Shown: piece by piece, positions 9,150 through 30,008 of the stretch
Position numbering within the stretch: position 1 is the stretch's first letter
Layout: every line of letters begins with the position of its first letter
Origin: Paramicrosporidium saccamoebae KSL3
Lineage: Eukaryota > Fungi > Cryptomycota
Assembly (NCBI GenBank): GCA_002794465.1
Contig: MTSL01000178.1
Span: forward strand, 127,609-159,608
Length of the DNA: 32,000 nucleotides
Direction: 5' to 3'
Made by a program: the position numbers and the translations under genes
The notes under the pieces: model-generated
Seen by the model: only the letters and a program-made list of their open reading frames with translations
Databases searched by the model: none
Told to the model about the DNA's origin: nothing

Positions 9150-11859
9150 ATGGAAGACCCGGTGCGATGGACTCGTTTTCAGCTCAGGCAGCTCTGTCGT
9201 GACAAAAAGCGCAGCAAGCCAGTTGCCAAATGCATTAAAAGTGCCCGAAGGGGCAATTCTAAAAAAGGAAATCCCCCCAAAGACATGGCCATTTCAACCC
9301 CGCAAATTGACAATGTTGACACGTGGAACGACTATATCAACCTATTTAGCTGCGACCAGTGTAATGTTCAAATACGCGAATTCCGACTCTACTGCCGATA
9401 TTGCGAAAAATCCAGTCTTGACGAATGGAATTATGAGAGCTATGATCTGTGTCCTGATTGCTACCAAAAGGCGTTTCCAGCGGAGCATCCGCATCCGCGC
9501 GAAAGTTTTGCGATCCGACACATGTCCTACTTTAATCGCGATGTCTCGACACTCATCCCAGACGGCCGTTGGGAGGGCGTATTGCTGGAGAAAAGCAACG
9601 TTGAGAGACTGTGTGCTTTCTGTCATGAGAACGAGACTGCCAATGAGCCCTTCATACCCTTTCCAATGTTGCGATTGCGCAAGACTGAACTGACGGAACA
9701 ACCTTCTCAACAACGAGATTACTTTCATCGGCCATATTTTTATACTCACCATCGTTGCGCAATCCTGAGTCCAGAGGTATATCACTGTCCGACCCCAACA
9801 GCCTCAATGACAGGCTACTACAATGTTGCTGCTGCATTACATCGCGCTCGTTCATTGAAATGCACACTGTGTCGACGTTCAGGTGCCACCATCGGCTGCT
9901 TCCATGTCCGGTGCAACCGCAGTTTCCATGTCACTTGTACGGAGAGGATGGACGAGTTAGCAAATGGGGCAGTGTTCTGGTGCGAGATGCATCGAGACGG
10001 ATGGGCTGATGTTTGGAGCTGCGATGCCTGCGGTGTGGAAATGGACGACAATTGGTTTTCATGTGCCACTTGCAAAGATTACTACAATTCTTTTGATTTG
10101 TGTACGTCATGTTATGAGCGCAATGACTGGAGTCATGATCATTCAAGAGAGGACTTTATAGCAACCCAGAAGGCTCAAGAGGATCCCAATGGAAATTGCG
10201 AAAGTCCTAATGGAAACTGCGGAAATCCTAGCGTATCTTTATTACAGTCAACGGATCGATCCAATGGGCCTGTCATTACTGAGCCCTATGCGCACTCTAG
10301 TGGATCTGTCACTGCTGAGCTCTATCCGCAATCTAATGGATCTGCTCTCGCTGAGATTTATTCACCGCCCCTTACTGAGTTTTTCTCGCTATATAATGGA
10401 CCCGCCCTTGCTGATCTCTACTCGTTGGATCTTACTTCTACCATCTTTGATATTCACAACCGGGCACCTCGATGTATGTTTACTGATTCCCACTTAGCTT
10501 GTAGGGTCCACTCATAACTCGTCCGATCTCAGTGGCACTTGGATCCCACAAATCCCCCGCTGGGCAATCCTCAAATACACAGCAGAGACTACCAAGGTGC
10601 TGTCCAACTTTCTGGGTCGTGGTACTGATGCTATTGAGGCGACTCTGCTCGGCCGGGCCTTTCTCGGGATTGATGTTAATGCTACGACACTGGAACTTGC
10701 ATTGCGCAATTGTCCAGACGCAAATGTTCAACTGGGCGATTCCCGCCAGGTGCCCCTAGAGGACGGAACGGTGGGATTGGTATTATCTCATCCGCCATAC
10801 TACAAGTGCATTGTTTATTCGACAGCTGGAGAGGCACCGGGAGATTTGTCCCGTTCCGTTTCTCTCGACGACTTTTGCGTCTCCATGCGGCTCGTGGCGG
10901 CCGAATCGAGAAGAGTGCTGATGGAGGACGGACGGATTGTGCTGTGCATTGGAGATAATCGCGAATCACGCCACGTTATCCCCGTAACACTGCGTGTGCT
11001 GCAAGAGTACCTACGGATGGGATTTGTCTTGGAGGAATACATTGTCAAACGCCAACGATGCTGTGCTGGTACTGCAAAGTCAGTCAGTCTCTCCACAATG
11101 TTTGGATTTCTCCTCCTCACCCATGAAATCATTATAGTTCTCGGTAAAACATCCACAACTAGCCGCCCAATGCCGATTAACTTACTTCTGTCAGTGAGTG
11201 AAACCAAACGAGTCATTTCGGCCAGTGTCGGGATAAAACCCTGTAAGGGAACAATTTGGATGGTCCCATCAGCCTGCAGAGACATTTCCACGCATCTCCA
11301 AAACCATTTTAGTGCCGTTTTTGGTGTCGTAGGTACTATGGCGTCAATCCTTTCTGCTTCATTTGACTACCACATGGCGCTTCCGTCTGGTCCTTTTCGG
11401 ACTACAGGTGAGATTCTCGATTTGTCGACAGATTTTGAAAGAAAAAGGAGAGAGAATATGACTCGGAATGCCTCTTTCTTGGAGGTTTCATGTGTTCCTG
11501 ATGTCTCTGACAAGAGCTCTGTTATCTCATTGTTGATTGCCGAGCCTGGTGTTCCCGTCTCGGCGATTTTAGAATATGCTAAATCTTTGCCAATTGGGGC
11601 CAGCGTGATCGTCGGAACGCAGGATTCTCGATGGGAGGATGGATCGTATCACTCGGCACTGTATTCCGCGTGGAAGACTTGCAGCGCCGTCCTACAGCTT
11701 AAAGAGATTGTCTATGTGGTGCGCGAAGGATGGACACGTCATCCCTCCCAATATCAGTCCACTGTCCGTCATCCGACCGAATGGCAGCCCTCTCCCTCTC
11801 CGTTGCAGATTGCCCATCTATCATATCTCATATACACCAAACACACTAATATGCGATAG
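9150..11859 (+). CDS. ZZ-ePHD-ZZ chromatin reader fused to an N6A/N4C-type amino-methyltransferase plus degenerate second MTase domain; intron 10474-10504; 892 aa
   Basis: Two ZZ fingers (CxxC..CxxC..Y/FDLCxxCY..H.H) and an HC5HC2H PHD-like finger. Splicing GTATGT..ACTGAT..TGTAG (31 nt) gives RAPR-W-STH...GTWIPQIPRWAILKYT...VLSNFLGRGTDAIEA...GIDVN...GDSR...LVLSHPPYY; total 2679 nt in frame. Confidence 0.82.
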
Positions 11860-12093: not shown

Positions 12094-13689
12094 CTACTTT
12101 TCCTCATCATGGATGAGTTGCGAATTGTTAATGCCATAAGTAAAGTAAATGAGCAGGCCTATGGCTGTCCATGCGGAAAATTGGAAAAAACCAATGAGCA
12201 CCTTTTCCATCTGCAACATCATGAACGAGTTGGCAGCCATGGCCACGCACGGAAACAGCGGCATTAGGGGAGTGGAAAAGGCTAGGGAGGTAGAGGCGAG
12301 ATAGCCGGAGTAAGCGGCAAAAAGATAGCAGAGACCAAGGAAGGGGACCAACATGGTCACAGCGGCGGTAATGTAGCCAAAGAAATGGTCAGTGTTATAG
12401 ACAACGGTCGACACAATTGTGCCCAGGAGATAGATTACGCTGAGGGCAGTTCCGAGTTTGGATATCGGACGATGCTGCTCAAACCTCACCACCAATAGTC
12501 CAGAACACAGAATTGACATTCCCAGCAGGGTTCCAAACGAAATCATATCAATCAATCCATTGTCAACATCCAAGAACAATGCCATTGCCGCAGTCAGGAT
12601 TGCCGTCATCGAAACACCAGCAACCGGTGTACCGTGATGATTCTCACGGGCAAAGAGACGGGGAAGAAGACCGTCCTTGGCAATCGCCTGGAAAATTTTT
12701 GGCTGTCCCATCAGACACGCAAACATTGTTGCCGCCATTGTAAACAGGGCACAAATTGCCACCACATACGACGCCCATGGAGCACCAACCTGCACAAATG
12801 CGTGCGCCAACGGCGACCTCTCGTCCAACAACAGATAACTCTTCATTCCGGTCAATACCAATCCTACTCCCATGTACAGAACAGTCGCTGTGCCTACAGT
12901 CAGCAACACGGCAATTGGCAGATCGCGGCCCGGATTGATGGCCTCTCCAGCCAGCGATGAGATTGTGTCATATCCAATGTATGAGAAGAACATTTCTCCA
13001 CTTCCCGAGAACACCCCATTCAGACCGTGGGGCATAAAGGGGGTCCAGTTTGACTTTTCCACGTACATGCTTCCCACACCCAAAATGAACAGAATGATTC
13101 CGAGATTCAGCGCCGTAATGCAGTTGGTGATGATGGCACCAAACTTGAGGCCGCGCGATACAATCCCACCGATCAGGAGGATAACCACTGCTGCCATCAC
13201 ATTGATACGAAAGTCAATGCCTCCCATTGTTGTCAGTGGTACGTGGTACAACACTTCAGGGACCTTCCATCCTGCTTGCGCAAAGACTGACACAAGATAT
13301 TGCGACCAGCCACCAGCAATAGCAGCGGCGGCAAAGGCATATTCCAGTGTCAAATTCCATCCAATCAGCCATCCCAAAAACTCACCCATCAGCGTGTAAA
13401 AGTATGCGTATCCAGACCCTGCGATGGGCAGACTGCTGGCAAATTCCAGGTAGCATATCCCCGTGAACAGGCTCAGGAGACCCGCTATACCGGTGGAGAA
13501 TACTACTGAGGGGCCGGCCATATCCTTGGCGATCCTCCCGCATGTCACATAAATCCCACTGCCCACAGTGGCTGCTATCCCATATGCAGTCAGGTCATAC
13601 CACGTCAAGTGTTTCTCTCCCGAGGTCTGTTCGAGACTCTTTGCTATCGGTTTCCTTCTTGTAAGTGAATTCCAAATACCCTTGCTCAT
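12094..13689 (-). CDS. Cationic amino-acid transporter-like APC permease (CAT/SLC7 type)
   Basis: TM1 motif GIAATVGSGIYV, FFSYIGYD in TM6, PKIFQAIAKDGLLP, extra C-terminal TMs with FSTPLMPLFP. Confidence 0.9.
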   Translation of the reverse strand: MSKGIWNSLTRRKPIAKSLEQTSGEKHLTWYDLTAYGIAATVGSGIYVTCGRIAKDMAGPSVVFSTGIAGLLSLFTGICYLEFASSLPIAGSGYAYFYTLMGEFLGWLIGWNLTLEYAFAAAAIAGGWSQYLVSVFAQAGWKVPEVLYHVPLTTMGGIDFRINVMAAVVILLIGGIVSRGLKFGAIITNCITALNLGIILFILGVGSMYVEKSNWTPFMPHGLNGVFSGSGEMFFSYIGYDTISSLAGEAINPGRDLPIAVLLTVGTATVLYMGVGLVLTGMKSYLLLDERSPLAHAFVQVGAPWASYVVAICALFTMAATMFACLMGQPKIFQAIAKDGLLPRLFARENHHGTPVAGVSMTAILTAAMALFLDVDNGLIDMISFGTLLGMSILCSGLLVVRFEQHRPISKLGTALSVIYLLGTIVSTVVYNTDHFFGYITAAVTMLVPFLGLCYLFAAYSGYLASTSLAFSTPLMPLFPCVAMAANSFMMLQMEKVLIGFFQFSAWTAIGLLIYFTYGINNSQLIHDEEK

Positions 13690-14795: not shown

Positions 14796-16973
14796 ATGAC
14801 ATCTAGCAGCATGAATACTTTGACCGCAATTAGCTCGGCCATGGTGCAACTGGATGAGGCAGCCTATCGTCTTGTGATGAGTGTTCCGGAGCATCGCAAA
14901 AAGTACCTCTTTGTTTTGGCCATGACACTCGTGTCAACCTACGTTGCGCGACGTAAACTCGGCCGCTCTGCCGCCCGCAATCCGTTGACGGAACTGGTGG
15001 AGCGCCGTCGCGTGCACAGAAAAGTCGGTGTGGACGCGCAATTCCTGGCCCAACTAAAGAAAATTGTGCCGATTTGCGTGCCGGGTGTGGCCAGCAAGGA
15101 ATGTGCATTGTTAGTGTCATTGGCGGGGATATTGATTGCCAGGACGTGGCTGGACATTTGGTTCTCCAGCTTCAACGGAGTTGTGGTGCGGTCCATTGTG
15201 TCGCGGGATTGGCAGCTCTTTACCAAAAATGCCCTGTTTCTGTTTGGAATGATGATGTGGCCGATGAGTGTGGTGAATAACTCGCTGAAGCTGAACATTA
15301 ACATGTTGGCGTTGGCGTTCCGGTCAAGGCTGACGCACTATGCACATGATCAGTACTTGAAGGCCATTACGTTCTACAAGGTCGCCAATCTGGATAATCG
15401 GATCCAGAACGCGGACCAGCTGCTCACTCAGGACATTGACAAGTTTAGCGAGACAATGACCCATCTTTATTCGGATATTGCCAAGCCGATTGTGGACATT
15501 GGGCTGTTTGCGTACAAGCTTGGCCAGTCGATTGGAGCTGAGGCGCCTTTGATGATGCTGGCATACTTTGTTACTTCGGGAGTGGTACTTCGGGCCGTCT
15601 CGCCGCCATTTGGAAAGTACACGGCCATTGAACAGAACCTGGAGGGTGAGCTCCGCTACAACCATAGCCGTATTATTGCTCATTCCGAAGAGATTGCATT
15701 TTATCGCGGTGGAGAGAGGGAGAAGCAGATTGCCAATGGAACTTTCCAGCGGATCAAGGGCCATTTGCGCAAAGTGTTTGTGCTGAGATTTACCAATGGG
15801 ATTATTGACTCTGTTCTTGTCAAGTATTGTGCCACCCAGCTGGCCTTTTTTATTCTGAGCCGACCGGTGTTTGGCAGGAATGCTGAACGGTATTCCAAAG
15901 AGGTGGTTGGTACGGATTCCACAAAGATTATGGAAGACTACAGCACAAATTCGGGCTATCTTATCAATTTGTCGCAGGCCGTGGGAAGACTTGTGTTGGC
16001 GGGACGCGATCTGACTCGATTTGCAGGCTACACGTTCCGAGTGTCAGAGTTCTTTGCAGTGCTGGAGGACATTAACAGTGGAAGATATCAACGCACAATG
16101 GTGTCGACGGATCCATCGGGAATCAACGAGGTGCGCACAATTGACCAAGGATCGCTGGATGGACAGATTGTGGAAATGGATGGAGTGATTGAGTTTAAGA
16201 ATGTTCCGATCTGCACGCCAAACGGAGACATTTTGGTGCCGTCCATGTCGTTCCGAGTGGAATCGGGGATGAACTGTCTGATCACGGGACCGAATGGATG
16301 TGGAAAAAGTTCACTATTCCGCATTCTTGGCGGACTGTGGCCAATCTTTGGAGGCGTACTGACAAAGCCGTCACCCCGCAACATGTTCTATGTGCCACAA
16401 AAACCCTACTTGACGTTGGGAACTTTGCGCGACCAACTAATCTACCCGGACGTGCGCGAAGATGCTACCAAGGCAGGATTTGACGATGCAAACCTGATGG
16501 CGCTACTTGGAAAGGTGAATTTGGAATACTTGGTGTCACGCGAGGGCGGTTGGGATGCAGTGCGTGATTGGGCGGATGTGTTGTCAGGAGGTGAGAAACA
16601 ACGGGTGGCAATGGCGCGACTGTTCTATCATCGCCCACAGTTTGCCATCCTCGATGAGTGCACAAGTGCAGTAAGTATGGACGTGGAAGGACAAATGTAC
16701 CGTTATGCCCGCGAACTGGGAATTACCCTATTTACAGTATCCCATCGACCGTCGTTGGTACCATACCATGAATTCCTGCTACGATTCGATGGCCAGGGGA
16801 ATTATGAATTTGAAGAGCTGAAACATGATGGGGCTTTTGCATTTGCCCGGAACAATGGTGACTCATCGCCAAGTCGACCGGTCAAGATGATGACGGAGGG
16901 ACCATATGTTGGCGACGGACATGATTACTTTGAAGAAGAGGAGGGTGAATTGTCTGATGACGAATTGGAGTAA
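14796..16973 (+). CDS. ABCD3: Peroxisomal ABC half-transporter, ABCD family (PMP70/ABCD3, Pxa-like)
   Basis: NADQLLTQDIDKF, EAA-like EEIAFYRG, Walker A GPNGCGKSS, signature LSGGEKQR, Walker B AILDECTSA, TVSHR switch. Confidence 0.92.
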   Translation: MTSSSMNTLTAISSAMVQLDEAAYRLVMSVPEHRKKYLFVLAMTLVSTYVARRKLGRSAARNPLTELVERRRVHRKVGVDAQFLAQLKKIVPICVPGVASKECALLVSLAGILIARTWLDIWFSSFNGVVVRSIVSRDWQLFTKNALFLFGMMMWPMSVVNNSLKLNINMLALAFRSRLTHYAHDQYLKAITFYKVANLDNRIQNADQLLTQDIDKFSETMTHLYSDIAKPIVDIGLFAYKLGQSIGAEAPLMMLAYFVTSGVVLRAVSPPFGKYTAIEQNLEGELRYNHSRIIAHSEEIAFYRGGEREKQIANGTFQRIKGHLRKVFVLRFTNGIIDSVLVKYCATQLAFFILSRPVFGRNAERYSKEVVGTDSTKIMEDYSTNSGYLINLSQAVGRLVLAGRDLTRFAGYTFRVSEFFAVLEDINSGRYQRTMVSTDPSGINEVRTIDQGSLDGQIVEMDGVIEFKNVPICTPNGDILVPSMSFRVESGMNCLITGPNGCGKSSLFRILGGLWPIFGGVLTKPSPRNMFYVPQKPYLTLGTLRDQLIYPDVREDATKAGFDDANLMALLGKVNLEYLVSREGGWDAVRDWADVLSGGEKQRVAMARLFYHRPQFAILDECTSAVSMDVEGQMYRYARELGITLFTVSHRPSLVPYHEFLLRFDGQGNYEFEELKHDGAFAFARNNGDSSPSRPVKMMTEGPYVGDGHDYFEEEEGELSDDELE

Positions 16974-23475: not shown

Positions 23476-23542
23476 CTTTCTTGGTCTCTAAGGGTGAGTC
23501 AAGAAGACTGACCCTGGCAAGGCCATCGGTACTTGGCCGCGG

Positions 23543-25690
23543 ATGAAAGCTGATTGTATGTATGTTTCGGCCGGCTGTTCTCCCGAGACAGACGTTCTGG
23601 ATGTATCTCCAGACGGACTACTCGCATACGGTTCGGGCCCGAATGTTCTTATTACATCAGTGACCAATCCAAGAGCGAGGCTAGTCCAGGAACTTCCTAC
23701 AGGACACGTCCACTGCATTCGATTGCTATGTAATGTCAGTGGCGCTGTTTGCTGGGTCATGGCAGGTTCCGTAGACGGAACCGTGCGCACCTGGACACCA
23801 AAAGGGGCTGCAGGTCCTGTTTTAAAGATAGGAAATCCTGTGAATGCTATTGCAGTTGCACGGTCTGGAGACTCGCAGTGGATTGTCTGCGCATCGGATA
23901 CACAGGGCAATGTGCATTTAGCCTCATTTGATGGCAAAGATTATCAAAATGTCACTTCGATGGCTGTCAGTAGTCGTAAAGTCATCTCGGTAGGGATAAT
24001 GTTGGTTGAGGGTGTGCCAGTTGTGCTGGCTGGCTTGGGTGATAGTCAACTCGCCGTCCTTATGGACTCCAGGATTGTTCTTAGACTCGGCGGACATTCC
24101 AACTGGATTAATTCTATCGACTGCATTGTCGTTGATGGTGTACTTTATTTTGCAACCGGCTCGTCTGATCGGACTGTGCGGGTTTGGAAGGTTAGCCCGG
24201 TTAAGGAAAAACCGACGGGGTTAGTGGAATTGGTTCCGAGTCGCACCGAATTTGTCCTTTCCAATGGCATTAAATATGAGATATCATGCGACACAATCAT
24301 TTATGGACACGAAGGCATGATAAACTCGGTCCGGTGGGACCGCCAGTCCAAGAGGCGTTGTCTAGTGACCGCCTCGGCAGATCGCAGCTTGATCATATGG
24401 GAACCCGCCATTGATGGATGGAAAAGTATCATGCAGTTGGGCGAGATTTCTGGTATGAGTACTGCTAGTGGTTTCTTCTCGGGACTCGTCTGTACTGTTA
24501 ATGGGAAAGAACGGATCATTGCACACGGTGCCACGGGAAGTATTATACAGTATGCCCGCTCGGATTGTCATGAACTGTACAAAGTGACAGAACCAATAGT
24601 GACAGGCCACACGGGCAGCATTCAGTCATGCTCTTGGGAGCCCAATGGAGAGTTTCTGGCAACTACCAGTCTGGACAAGACGACACGTATTTTTGCACCC
24701 CGTTTGGATGGCGATTGGAATGAAATTGCCCGTCCGCAGATTCACGGCTACGATATGCAAGCCATCAGTGTCCTCGATTCTGGCCACTTTCTTTCTGCTG
24801 GCGATGAAAAAATTCTTCGATCGTTTGAGGCACCAAAATCATTTTCCATTCGTCTCAAATGCATGAATGGGGCTGCTTTAGAGGAGAATGAACACGCTGA
24901 GGCCGTGGTAGTTCCGGCATTGGGATTGTCTAATAGAATGGGCGGTTCTGAAGATGAAAGAGTCGTCCTCCCTGACATGTCTCTTGACAAGTCACCCTCC
25001 GAGTACGATCTTTGTAAACACACATTTTGGATTGAGACGGATAAGTTGTATGGACACGGCTTGGAGGTTTATTCTCTGGCGATTAATCGCACAGGACAAT
25101 TGGCTGCATCAGCCAGCAAATCAACCACAACCATTGACGCTGCCATCCATTTTTGGTCCCGTAATCCAAACAACACCTGGACACCACTCTCGTCCATCAA
25201 TGTACATGCCTTGACGGTGGTTAGGATGAAATTCTCGCCTGATAGTCGGTATCTCCTCAGCGTATCTCGGGACCGTCATTTCTCCATAATTGACCTCCGG
25301 GAGCAGCCAGTCTGCGTCCAATATCAGGAGGCACATGGTCGAATTATTTGGTGCGCAGACTGGTCCCACGACGGCAGCTTCTTTGTCACGGGCTCTCGTG
25401 ATCGCACCATTAAAACCTGGCACCGAACAGGCGACTTGTGGACAGAATCGAGTCGCATTCAATTCGAATCCCCAGTCACTGCAGTTGCCCTACATGCCTC
25501 CAATTTAATGGCTGTTGGTTTAGAAAATGGATCGCTTGCCTTTTATAGACTCACAAACGATGCATGGACATTGGCAGTCATGCATAGTAATGCGCATTCT
25601 GCACCAATCACTGATCTCCAATGGCGGCCACAGTCTGACCAGTTGGCGGCCGTTTCCAACACTGTTCAAATTTACAGCCTTGTCAGTTAA
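23543..25690 (+). CDS. ELP2: Elongator complex subunit 2 (WD40)
   Basis: WD repeats with Elp2 hallmarks EIARPQIHGYD, DEK-I-L-R-S-F-E-A-P, KLYGHGLEV, AHGRIIWCADW. Confidence 0.93.
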   Translation: MKADCMYVSAGCSPETDVLDVSPDGLLAYGSGPNVLITSVTNPRARLVQELPTGHVHCIRLLCNVSGAVCWVMAGSVDGTVRTWTPKGAAGPVLKIGNPVNAIAVARSGDSQWIVCASDTQGNVHLASFDGKDYQNVTSMAVSSRKVISVGIMLVEGVPVVLAGLGDSQLAVLMDSRIVLRLGGHSNWINSIDCIVVDGVLYFATGSSDRTVRVWKVSPVKEKPTGLVELVPSRTEFVLSNGIKYEISCDTIIYGHEGMINSVRWDRQSKRRCLVTASADRSLIIWEPAIDGWKSIMQLGEISGMSTASGFFSGLVCTVNGKERIIAHGATGSIIQYARSDCHELYKVTEPIVTGHTGSIQSCSWEPNGEFLATTSLDKTTRIFAPRLDGDWNEIARPQIHGYDMQAISVLDSGHFLSAGDEKILRSFEAPKSFSIRLKCMNGAALEENEHAEAVVVPALGLSNRMGGSEDERVVLPDMSLDKSPSEYDLCKHTFWIETDKLYGHGLEVYSLAINRTGQLAASASKSTTTIDAAIHFWSRNPNNTWTPLSSINVHALTVVRMKFSPDSRYLLSVSRDRHFSIIDLREQPVCVQYQEAHGRIIWCADWSHDGSFFVTGSRDRTIKTWHRTGDLWTESSRIQFESPVTAVALHASNLMAVGLENGSLAFYRLTNDAWTLAVMHSNAHSAPITDLQWRPQSDQLAAVSNTVQIYSLVS

Positions 25691-25936: not shown

Positions 25937-26373
<437 letters not shown>

Positions 26374-26440
26374 CTATCGGTTAGTATCAGCAAGCGTGAC
26401 GACAAGGGGATGGATGGATGACCAAGGGACGGAAACTTAC
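26374..26440 (-). other. 67-nt 5'-UTR intron of RPL40, ending 3 nt before the ATG
   Basis: AAG|GTAAGT...TACTAAC-CGATAG|ACGATG: perfect donor, branch point and acceptor; contains CATCCATCCATCCC. Confidence 0.85.
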
Positions 26441-26514
26441 CTTAGGACCAGCGGCACCAACCAGGGTTGGCGGGCAATACAAGTGGGACGCTGATTGGTG
26501 CGAGTTGGAGGACG

Positions 26515-28685: not shown

Positions 28686-30008
28686 CTATTTCTGCTTCTT
28701 CTTCTCCAATAGGGCCAATAGTTTTCGGACCTCAGTCATTGTAATGCCAATGGATGCGGCCACGGTGAGATAGGCGTGCGGATAGGCCGTATGATGAGTC
28801 CCAAATGGCTGTCCCATTCGGACGAGACGCGCTCCCGAGACGGAACGATGGAATAGACGTGCGCCAAGCATATCGTCAGTTGGATCTACTACGAGGGCTA
28901 TAGATATGTCATTGGAGGGTGTCTCCAAGACTCGATGGCTCAAGCAGAGTCCCTCCTTCAATGCCTTGAAACAGTCGATCCGTTGCTGCAATAATTGACG
29001 GTAACCAACGGCTCCCATGGACAGCAAGGTGATGAGCAGATCGAGAAGGGGTGAAATGCTGGCTCGGCCTGGATAGAGAGCAGCCACTTCGGCACAAAGG
29101 ACGTCTGCTCCAAAGACAATCGATCCTCCAACGGGAACCATGAAATTCTTGTCGCTGCTCTGTATCACTGCCGTCACTAAACCCCGACGGATGGCTTCAT
29201 TTAGTTGCTTGGTGACAACATTGGATTGCAATCCGTAGGCATTGTTGACCACTTGGGGGATGGCGTAGAGCTGACACAATTCTCCAATTGCACATATATT
29301 GTCACAGCCTCGTGGTGCAAAGCAACTGCTGGTTGCCACCACTGCTGCAATATTTTCTGCGCCCAGACGGCCAATGGTTGTCTCGAGGGCATTCAAATCT
29401 GTACTCACTTGATCCCTCATCAGACAGTTCTCCACCACCACCAGTTCCAGTCCCGTAAAGCTGACACATTTCACACACGATTTCTGGTCGATTCTCGGCA
29501 TCAGTACATAGCGACTTTTGGGACGTCGAAGGGCTATTACTCGCAATACACAGGCCAATCCCATTCCTGTGGCTACCGGCAGCACTAGCACACCTCCCAA
29601 CATTCCCAATTGTAGACCTGCCACCTTGATTGCCTGTTTCACCAGCTTGGTGGTAATAATCTGTATGAGGGAAGATCCGGGGGCTTTGGGCTGCACCTCT
29701 GTCAGTTCACCTGACCGGCCAATGCCATGGGCCAGACCAAAATGTCTTCTTTTCACGATTCCCGAGTATACTCGTCCTTCCCGCTCACCCGCTCCGCAAG
29801 AGTCTGGGTTGTTGTTTGCGTCCATGCATGCGAGCTTGTTTATAATAAACTCAATGGTGCTGTCATCGTATCCTTTTGAGGGCAGGGTCGGGTTGCCTAG
29901 AAAGTCCAGAAACAGCTTTTCCCGCTTCTCCACTGCCTGTCCCGCCTGTTGCAATACGCTCTCTCCACACTGGTCTAATTGACTGCCAATAACTGTCTGT
30001 GCTCTCAT
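28686..30008 (-). CDS. SEPSECS: O-phosphoseryl-tRNA(Sec) selenium transferase (eukaryotic selenocysteine synthase)
   Basis: Colinear with eukaryotic SepSecS: MDANN..GAGEREGRV, HGIGRSG..VQPKAPGSS, PVATGM, PRIDQKSC, SCFAPR, VNNAYG, PLP-lysine motif SSDKNFMVPVGG, YPGRAS, VSGAR, YPHAYL. Confidence 0.96.
   Translation of the reverse strand: MRAQTVIGSQLDQCGESVLQQAGQAVEKREKLFLDFLGNPTLPSKGYDDSTIEFIINKLACMDANNNPDSCGAGEREGRVYSGIVKRRHFGLAHGIGRSGELTEVQPKAPGSSLIQIITTKLVKQAIKVAGLQLGMLGGVLVLPVATGMGLACVLRVIALRRPKSRYVLMPRIDQKSCVKCVSFTGLELVVVENCLMRDQVSTDLNALETTIGRLGAENIAAVVATSSCFAPRGCDNICAIGELCQLYAIPQVVNNAYGLQSNVVTKQLNEAIRRGLVTAVIQSSDKNFMVPVGGSIVFGADVLCAEVAALYPGRASISPLLDLLITLLSMGAVGYRQLLQQRIDCFKALKEGLCLSHRVLETPSNDISIALVVDPTDDMLGARLFHRSVSGARLVRMGQPFGTHHTAYPHAYLTVAASIGITMTEVRKLLALLEKKKQK

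Follow-up and report, generated by a model that had tools for sequence, protein, structure and literature searches.

Two adjacent open reading frames (ORFs) in the genome of Paramicrosporidium saccamoebae KSL3, at positions 9150–11859 on the forward strand of a 32,000-nucleotide stretch (contig MTSL01000178.1, positions 127,609–159,608; hereafter the window), raise the question of whether a single gene joins chromatin-reading zinc fingers to a base-modifying enzyme and, if so, what that enzyme methylates. A first-pass annotation, made from the DNA letters, had proposed that the two ORFs form one gene across a 31-nt intron, and that the product is a reader–writer fusion with a horizontally derived methyltransferase of prokaryotic type. 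Our analysis points the same way. We consider it probable that the locus is a single two-exon gene for an 892-aa chromatin protein, a reader–writer of the previously described Group-1 clade 4 methyltransferases, whose enzymatic half derives from a restriction-modification (R-M) system. For the activity itself, the comparisons described below give DNA adenine methylation an even chance or slightly better.

One gene in two exons

In-silico splicing yields one 892-aa frame from the ORF at 9150–10517 and the frame at 10505–11859 once exactly positions 10474–10504 are removed. The removed 31 nt (GTATGTTTACTGATTCCCACTTAGCTTGTAG) have the features of a phase 1 spliceosomal intron on the forward strand, with a GTATGT donor, a CTGAT that fits the CTRAY branch consensus and a TAG acceptor. 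The codon for W442 is built across the junction, from T (10473) and GG (10505–10506), and supplies the W of RAPR–WSTH. The acceptor TAG shuts the exon-2 frame directly upstream, and the frame of exon 1 meets a stop at 10515–10517, 14 codons into intron read-through, so that there is no read-through alternative. Exon 1 (9150–10473, forward strand; aa 1–441 and the first base of W442) is conserved in homologues and encodes a basic N-terminus, a ZZ-type zinc finger (ZZ1), an extended PHD finger (ePHD), a second ZZ finger (ZZ2), a repeat-bearing linker and, at its end, the 11 residues (TIFDIHNRAPR) that open the alignment block of the methyltransferase domain. Exon 2 (10505–11859, forward strand; aa 442–892 and the stop codon) carries the methyltransferase core and a C-terminal degenerate methyltransferase-like domain.

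Homology was used to choose between splice sites. The block DIPGRAPRW(A/S)(T/S)HSG.DYHGTW(L/I)PQ..RR.(L/I)L(R/K)YT is unbroken and nearly invariant in about 18 homologues drawn from Mucoromycota, Mortierellomycota, Glomeromycota, Zoopagomycota and Chytridiomycota. In the nearest relative, P0005, from compact eukaryotic metagenome contigs, the junction block and the whole ZZ–ePHD–ZZ–methyltransferase layout fall within a single intronless ORF of 911 aa. When GT..AG removals that leave long frames open were listed mechanically, the same donor came up with acceptors at 10497, 10504 and 10582. The 24-nt choice (acceptor 10497) runs into a stop at aa 448 and fails on homology, and the 109-nt choice (10474–10582) costs 26 conserved residues of the methyltransferase core. 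The 31-nt removal was accepted because it is the sole choice that gives back the family block RAPR–W(S/A)TH. Both the conserved block and the P0005 ORF uphold the 892-aa frame and the junction-made tryptophan of the first-pass annotation, and homology fixes where the exons join as well as the two termini of the coding region. A length of 31 nt is plausible, given that Microsporidia, the sister lineage, have introns of about 25 nt (PMC6349667).

The near-identical database protein P0001 is PSACC_02863 (798 aa; Paramicrosporidium saccamoebae, phylum Rozellomycota). Its deposited model is mis-spliced at two places, using the 109-nt intron at 10474–10582 and a 47-nt intron at 11557–11603. The latter was rejected, as it shifts the frame into a non-homologous tail and truncates the C-terminal domain. 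When no second intron is removed, read-through to 11859 aligns with the homologues (IVGTQDSR.., LKEIV.., LQIAHLSYLIY) up to a terminal LPIVHAYYLVF.K-like motif. Judged by these alignments, the 892-aa model is better than the deposited 798-aa annotation, and it restores what the deposited protein lacks, namely a portion of the catalytic core and the greater part of the final domain.

The intron contains two possible acceptors, TAG at 10495–10497 and TAG at 10502–10504. Use of the first, or retention of the intron, may yield a reader-only isoform, a ZZ–ePHD–ZZ protein of 447 or 455 aa, respectively, that lacks the enzyme.

A non-permuted amino-methyltransferase domain

The catalytic domain spans 10440–11154 on the forward strand (aa 431–658) and is interrupted by the intron. 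Its motifs follow the order W.TH..GTWIPQIPR, motif I SNFLGRGT (10603–10626, aa 475–482), GIDVN, motif IV SHPPY (10786–10800, aa 536–540), GDNRE, KRQR and THE; direct reading of the sequence finds SNFLGRGT, GIDVN and HPPY as the first-pass annotation had stated. Motif I thus precedes motif IV, a non-permuted arrangement. Every one of the 21 homologues that extend this far has HPPY, and about 50 positions of the catalytic domain are invariant across 11 aligned family sequences, all of them intact in the P. saccamoebae protein. Among the residues retained are S-N-F-x-G-R-G-T-D, the D/N of GIDxN, L-S-H-P-P-Y and G-D-N-R. By this comparison, the methyltransferase core is intact.

Pfam assigns the 892-aa protein to N6_N4_Mtase (PF01555) with 32.8 bits against a gathering threshold of 26.7, and the same family matches every one of 26 family members examined. 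Neither MT-A70 (PF05063) nor N6_Mtase (PF02384) is listed by Pfam for the 892-aa protein. The N6_N4_Mtase match comes in two swapped pieces, and the beta-class order (motif IV, target-recognition region, motif I) is reversed here. A profile search of the PDB behaves likewise: the beta-class enzyme TTHA0409 (2zie) aligns in two permuted stretches (2.7e-10), and MboIIA, N4-cytosine methylases and the ‘DpnA’ entry 5hek match over motif I only (5hek, 8e-4). The swapped pieces of the Pfam and TTHA0409 alignments mark the domain as a non-permuted relative of the beta-class DNA amino-methylases. An AlphaFold2 model of exon 2 has a predicted local distance difference test (pLDDT) score of about 80–90 over the catalytic domain, and overall values of 64.9 for pLDDT and 0.70 for the predicted TM-score.

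Prokaryotic relatives lie in restriction-modification loci

At E ≤ 1e-3, an exhaustive profile search returned 9117 proteins. Next after the fungal matches come proteins of 240–540 aa that are colinear over the whole domain, with E-values from 1e-68 to 1e-35. These prokaryotic relatives carry W.TH..Y.GNW.P.IPR, DPF.G.GTT and GxDIN, and mostly (T/A/L)HPPY; where named, they are annotated as ‘DNA methyltransferase’ of archaeal and bacterial metagenome-assembled genomes. A scan of species-representative genomes found 380 relatives, in Clostridia, Lachnospiraceae, Thermodesulfovibrionales, several archaeal phyla and a few isolates. For one prokaryotic relative, N6_N4_Mtase scored 102 bits and UPF0020 37 bits.

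The loci of close relatives (n = 49) frequently contain a Dam-type D12 methylase (29 of 49) or a DpnII endonuclease (13 of 49), identified by Pfam searches of the neighbours (PF02086 at 3.9e-53 and PF04556 at 5.4e-110, respectively), and some of the other loci encode a PD-(D/E)XK nuclease. Locus L023 is arranged as HPPY methylase, DpnM-like, canonical DpnA-like, DpnII. The fungal profile aligns with the HPPY methylase of the operon over 218 colinear columns (hhalign E 1.6e-47), whereas the canonical DpnA of the same locus, with DPPY first and FxGxG last, aligns over 51 columns only (71%, E 3.6e-5). From these alignments and gene orders, the prokaryotic source is a separate non-permuted HPPY methylase of Dam/DpnII operons, often found alongside DpnM and DpnA, and not DpnA proper.

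The C-terminal domain of the fungal proteins has a homologue in prokaryotic forms of about 500 aa (hhalign 98.1%, E 8.9e-14), which indicates that the two-domain unit is older than the transfer. In a neighbour-joining (NJ) tree, a crude one that carries no support values, all eukaryote-type sequences form one clade beside the two-domain prokaryotic forms, with the P. saccamoebae protein and P0005 near the base of that clade. This placement, together with the colinearity with R-M-associated methylases, agrees with the horizontal origin proposed earlier. The source can also be named more closely, as a distinct non-permuted HPPY methylase that often has the same two-domain layout and sits in Dam/DpnII operons.

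Several features of these sequences were seen in passing. The two-domain HPPY methylases of about 500 aa (in loci L001, L003 and L042, and proteins P0068, P0070, P0075 and P0088) have an N-terminal C-x2-C...H-x3-H zinc-ribbon-like region and a putative helix-turn-helix with the pattern ..GLSD.EIG..(F/Y)GV(T/N)F..(L/I)E.., and a conserved protein of about 190 aa with no Pfam match often follows them. In loci L015, L037 and L004, a conserved cysteine-rich protein of about 443 aa, likewise with no Pfam match, lies directly upstream of the HPPY methylase, in the place that a nuclease takes in other loci; it is possibly an uncharacterised restriction component. P0102 (683 aa, from a 3.7-kb ENA metagenome contig) combines an ePHD-like region with the family methyltransferase and an intermediate motif I (SNFSGGSGAEAIE). 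In the NJ tree it is a basal branch of the eukaryotic clade, and the organism it comes from could be non-fungal.

The reader half

Analysis of the N-terminal half identifies it as a ZZ–ePHD–ZZ module, in agreement with the first-pass annotation. Both ZZ fingers have the complete C-x2-C...C-x2-C...C-x2-C...H-x-H (C2-C2-C2-H2) ligand set. ZZ1 lies at 9351–9494 (forward strand; aa 68–115), with ligands C68, C71, C82, C85, C101, C104, H113 and H115; it is undetected by Pfam on the single sequence, and its eight ligands are invariant in 18 family members. ZZ2, at 10020–10142 (forward strand; aa 291–331), scores 0.0091 with Pfam ZZ on the single sequence, below threshold, and its eight ligands are invariant in 16 members. 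Family profiles of both fingers have ZZ domains as their best PDB matches, at 1e-4 to 1e-3: those of p300/CBP, p62, ADA2 and PRT1, and nothing else, for ZZ1, and those of PRT1, ADA2, CBP/p300 and HERC2 for ZZ2. Between the two fingers, the ePHD (zf-HC5HC2H; 9612–9995, forward strand; aa ~155–282) matches PF13771 at 1.7e-11 and PF13832 at 1.2e-8, both above the Pfam threshold. Its family profile matches the ePHD of KMT2D (1.6e-14) and the second ePHD of PHF6 (8.9e-11), as well as NTO1, JADE1, PHF7 and BRPF1. The ZZ domains of p300 and HERC2 bind the N-terminus of histone H3, and the ePHDs of PHF6, BRPF and KMT2D bind DNA or histone tails.

The first ~45 residues of the protein are rich in K and R, a composition compatible with nuclear import. 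ZZ2 is joined to the methyltransferase by a low-complexity linker (10183–10344, forward strand) with two in-frame short tandem DNA repeats, of 21 nt × 2.3 at 10183–10230 and 36 nt × 2.4 at 10259–10344, which encode the peptides NGNC and SNG....E.Y. Among homologues, this linker shows no conservation.

The C-terminal domain

The catalytic domain is followed by a degenerate methyltransferase-like domain with a KRI-type helix (11155–11856, forward strand; aa 659–892). In the AlphaFold2 model (pLDDT 66.7), the domain has a predicted beta-alpha-beta, Rossmann-like order of secondary structure. Foldseek matches to this model are weak (E ~1e-3, TM ~0.3), with class-I S-adenosylmethionine methyltransferases taking all of the top 50 places. 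The domain lacks a glycine-rich motif I loop and a PPY, with AEPGVP at the motif IV position. A long conserved helix, encoded at ~11428–11490 (FERKRRENMTRN), sits between the early strands and the strand where motif IV would fall. It aligns with the family helix Y-E-x-x-R-x-(K/R)-(R/Q)-I-x-E-N, in which E753, R756 and N763 are invariant, and in the model it occupies residues 92–105, between strands 63–67 and 125–130, in agreement with the published position of a KRI element. As a test for internal duplication, the C-terminal domain was aligned with the catalytic domain using hhalign; the result was non-significant (8% probability), with a sensible register. These features are compatible with an inactive second methyltransferase domain.

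A known fungal family and comparable systems

The first-pass annotation had cautioned that fusions of this kind might already be known, and the caution was justified. In a computational study, Iyer, Zhang and Aravind (BioEssays 2016; PMC4738411) presented Group-1 clade 4 as a clade with an unpermuted catalytic domain, restricted to basal fungi, fused to ZZ, PHD and chromo domains and bearing an inactive C-terminal methyltransferase domain with a KRI element between strands 3 and 4. Its prokaryotic versions occur in DpnII R-M systems, and those authors predicted that the family is a writer of DNA adenine methylation in early fungi, acting on single-stranded DNA (ssDNA) by analogy with DpnA (PMC4738411). 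With its non-permuted [DNSH]PP[YFW] domain, ZZ/PHD fusion and KRI element, the 892-aa protein very probably belongs to this clade. The DpnII-type R-M context of the prokaryotic relatives is borne out here, but the specific tie to DpnA (PMC4738411) is not, given the 51-column match described above.

Partner domains identified by Pfam among the 26 members (ePHD in 23, MBT in 13, ZZ in 5 and GATA in 4, together with chromo-like, Tudor, Agenet and SAWADEE domains) agree with the published list. The P. saccamoebae protein is a minimal clade member: Pfam finds no MBT, chromo or GATA domain in it, in contrast to other members. Named family matches come from Mucoromycota, Mortierellomycota, Glomeromycota, Zoopagomycota, Kickxellomycotina, Chytridiomycota and Rozellomycota, and none from Dikarya, animals or plants; besides these, there are a few unnamed metagenome proteins such as P0102. 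The genome of the Rozellomycota member appeared in 2017, after the description of the clade. While this kind of fusion has been known since 2016, what is new is the Rozellomycota member, its minimal architecture and the corrected gene model. The Rozellomycota member supports an acquisition near the base of Fungi, and the compact 892-aa form, free of the MBT and chromo extensions of most members, would be convenient for expression and structural work. The family is unmentioned in a 2025 Nat Genet survey, a 2026 review of fungal methylation and a 2025 Rhizopus paper, and our literature search on N6_N4_Mtase/PF01555 in fungi brought up a single relevant paper, on a rotifer.

That paper describes N4CMT of bdelloid rotifers (Rodriguez et al. 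2022; PMC8885841), which resembles the fungal family as a captured bacterial N6_N4_Mtase joined to a reader of histone marks, a ‘histone-read, DNA-write’ arrangement. N4CMT itself has a permuted beta-class domain followed by a chromodomain at its C-terminus, is an experimentally established writer of N4-methylcytosine (4mC), and reportedly has no eukaryotic homologues (PMC8885841). The fungal family, in contrast, is non-permuted, has HPPY, N-terminal ZZ/ePHD readers and a second degenerate domain, and its activity is a predicted one. N4CMT is an independent acquisition and an analogue.

Two other systems write N6-methyladenine (6mA) in early-diverging fungi. In Mucor lusitanicus, MetB (PF02384) and the MT-A70 complex MTA1c were found by experiment to write both the asymmetric and the symmetric 6mA (Lax et al. 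2024; PMC11258239). MetB is likewise of bacterial origin; however, MetB (PF02384) and MT-A70 (PF05063) belong to methyltransferase families unrelated to the PF01555-type family, which Lax et al. 2024 (PMC11258239) did not include in their set of candidates. We considered whether the family might be the ‘EDF-specific methyltransferase of bacterial origin’ of that study (EDF, early-diverging fungi) and rejected the identity, as that enzyme is MetB, an unrelated PF02384 protein. If the prediction made here is right, the family would add a third route to amino-methylated bases in early fungi, an independent bacterial acquisition beside the MT-A70 complex and MetB, and a natural ‘histone-read, DNA-write’ enzyme comparable to the plant chromomethylases and rotifer N4CMT.

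Proposed function and alternative explanations

In the model we favour, a two-domain unit was captured once from an R-M-associated gene, at or before the base of Fungi, and was then fused to chromatin readers. The ZZ and ePHD fingers would dock the enzyme on histone H3 tails and/or DNA, a role proposed from the likeness of the ZZ fingers to the H3 N-terminus readers of p300 and HERC2 and of the ePHD to its counterparts in KMT2D, PHF6 and BRPF. The HPPY pocket would flip out a base and methylate its exocyclic amine, most likely the N6 of DNA adenine, possibly in ssDNA. The second, putatively inactive domain may act as an intrinsic partner subunit, in the manner of METTL14/MTA9 or of the dimer mate in beta-class enzymes. 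We infer a DNA substrate from the Pfam affinity and the R-M context of the prokaryotic relatives.

A number of observations weigh against this model. The 31-nt intron is deduced from homology. The structural models are moderate overall (pLDDT 65–67). Motif I has shifted from the prokaryotic DPF.G.GTT to SNFLGRGTD, a change that could alter cofactor binding. A histidine at the first position of motif IV is uncommon, and our literature search found no study of its base specificity; nor did it find a functional, biochemical or modification study of Group-1 clade 4. Mucor lusitanicus has an orthologue, P0012, and the fact that MetB and MT-A70 account for 6mA in this fungus, leaving little bulk 6mA for P0012, argues against a major role of the family in bulk 6mA; the orthologue may instead act on a minor, conditional or different substrate. 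Finally, the best Foldseek match of the catalytic domain is the archaeal tRNA m2G10 methyltransferase Trm11 (7.7e-11), followed by generic class-I methyltransferases, and archaeal Trm11 (5e71) also gives a colinear match in the PDB profile search (3.4e-8).

The Trm11 matches speak for an RNA methyltransferase, either a Trm11-like N2-guanine enzyme or an N6-adenine enzyme, which the readers would guide to chromatin-associated RNA or which would act off chromatin. Trm11 and the fungal domain share a non-permuted Rossmann methyltransferase fold with xPPY, the non-permuted order and [D/H]PPY being common to both families, and NCBIfam TIGR01177 matches at 1.7e-4. That match amounts to 21 bits, however, far under the cut-off of 316.55, and Foldseek penalises permuted beta-class DNA methylases: it aligns sequentially, so that circular permutants cannot match, and it was set aside as uninformative for telling a DNA from an RNA substrate. 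Trm11 itself has an N-terminal THUMP domain, a Trm112 partner and a tRNA substrate. Pfam finds neither THUMP nor UPF0020 at E ≤ 1 in the 892-aa protein, nor any other RNA-binding domain, and UPF0020 is absent among the families matched by the 26 members. The prokaryotic relatives, moreover, lie in DpnII-type R-M operons. The first-pass annotation had left a Trm11-like RNA substrate as an alternative; its structural side stands, in that Trm11 is the best Foldseek match, and it is weakened by the R-M context and the missing THUMP and UPF0020 matches, such that we regard an RNA substrate as unlikely. DNA could also be modified at another base, by an N4-cytosine methyltransferase that would be the fungal analogue of bdelloid N4CMT. 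N6_N4_Mtase enzymes have switched repeatedly between 6mA and 4mC (PMC8885841), and motif IV begins with a residue that differs from the D/N usual in N6-adenine enzymes and whose meaning no assay has fixed. On the other hand, N4-cytosine enzymes typically have S at this position (PMC4738411), where the family has an invariant H; the prokaryotic relatives are found with Dam/DpnII systems, which are specific for GATC and rely on adenine methylation; and N4CMT, with its permuted beta-class domain and C-terminal chromodomain, was acquired independently. We therefore place 4mC as distinctly unlikely.

The [DNSH]PP[YFW] superfamily includes glutamine-N5 protein methylases (PMC4738411), which raises the prospect of a HemK/N6AMT1-like enzyme that methylates a protein amide or amine, such as a histone residue presented by the ZZ and ePHD fingers. 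The reader modules of related proteins do bind histone tails, and the bulk 6mA of Mucor is explained by other enzymes. Searches of Pfam, NCBIfam and PDB profiles nevertheless revealed no sequence affinity to the HemK/PrmC families, and the closest relatives are R-M-associated, making a protein substrate highly unlikely. Another explanation dispenses with catalysis: the methyltransferase half could be dead in fungi, leaving a reader or scaffold, or retention of the intron could mean that the 455-aa reader is all that is made. The departure of motif I from the prokaryotic consensus fits the former; for the latter, microsporidian miniature introns are often poorly spliced (PMC6349667), and either retention or use of the first AG (10497) would give the reader-only proteins described above. 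Against both, about 50 catalytic residues, among them FxGxG, HPPY and the acidic residue of motif II, do not vary across all the early-diverging fungal groups sampled, and the 450 codons 3′ of the intron form an open frame with conservation up to the final residues. Such conservation is unexpected for a dead or untranslated region, and loss of the enzyme is very improbable.

A further reading would keep the enzyme active. Here, the clade would write a mark that current surveys of fungal 6mA miss, on transiently single-stranded DNA in replication or transcription bubbles, as 4mC, or on an amine of chromatin-associated RNA or protein, with the ZZ and ePHD fingers aiming it at H3 tails and the dead domain serving as an intramolecular partner. 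We think this rather unlikely. Were it true, the fact that an intranuclear parasite has kept the gene despite strong genome reduction would suggest that the gene serves an important function, and the product could be switched between reader-only (447 or 455 aa) and reader–writer (892 aa) forms by splicing to the first AG or by retaining the intron.

Genomic neighbourhood

The gene lies in a very gene-dense region, flanked by genes at 7282–8451 and 12094–13689 on the reverse strand and at 5637–6986 and 14796–16973 on the forward strand. Their predicted products are a UBA-UAS-UBX (UBA-thioredoxin-like-UBX) protein, an amino-acid permease, an M48 peptidase and an ABCD-type half transporter. These flanking genes, ordinary eukaryotic ones of the housekeeping kind, together with the spliceosomal intron, rule out bacterial contamination as the source of the methyltransferase sequence. 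A tRNA scan found no tRNA genes in the 32-kb window. Candidate GT..AG introns of 52–119 nt that keep the frames of neighbouring genes open were seen at 23494–23612, 26345–26451, 29342–29408 and 16011–16096; should they be real, no other intron in the window would be as short as the 31-nt one.

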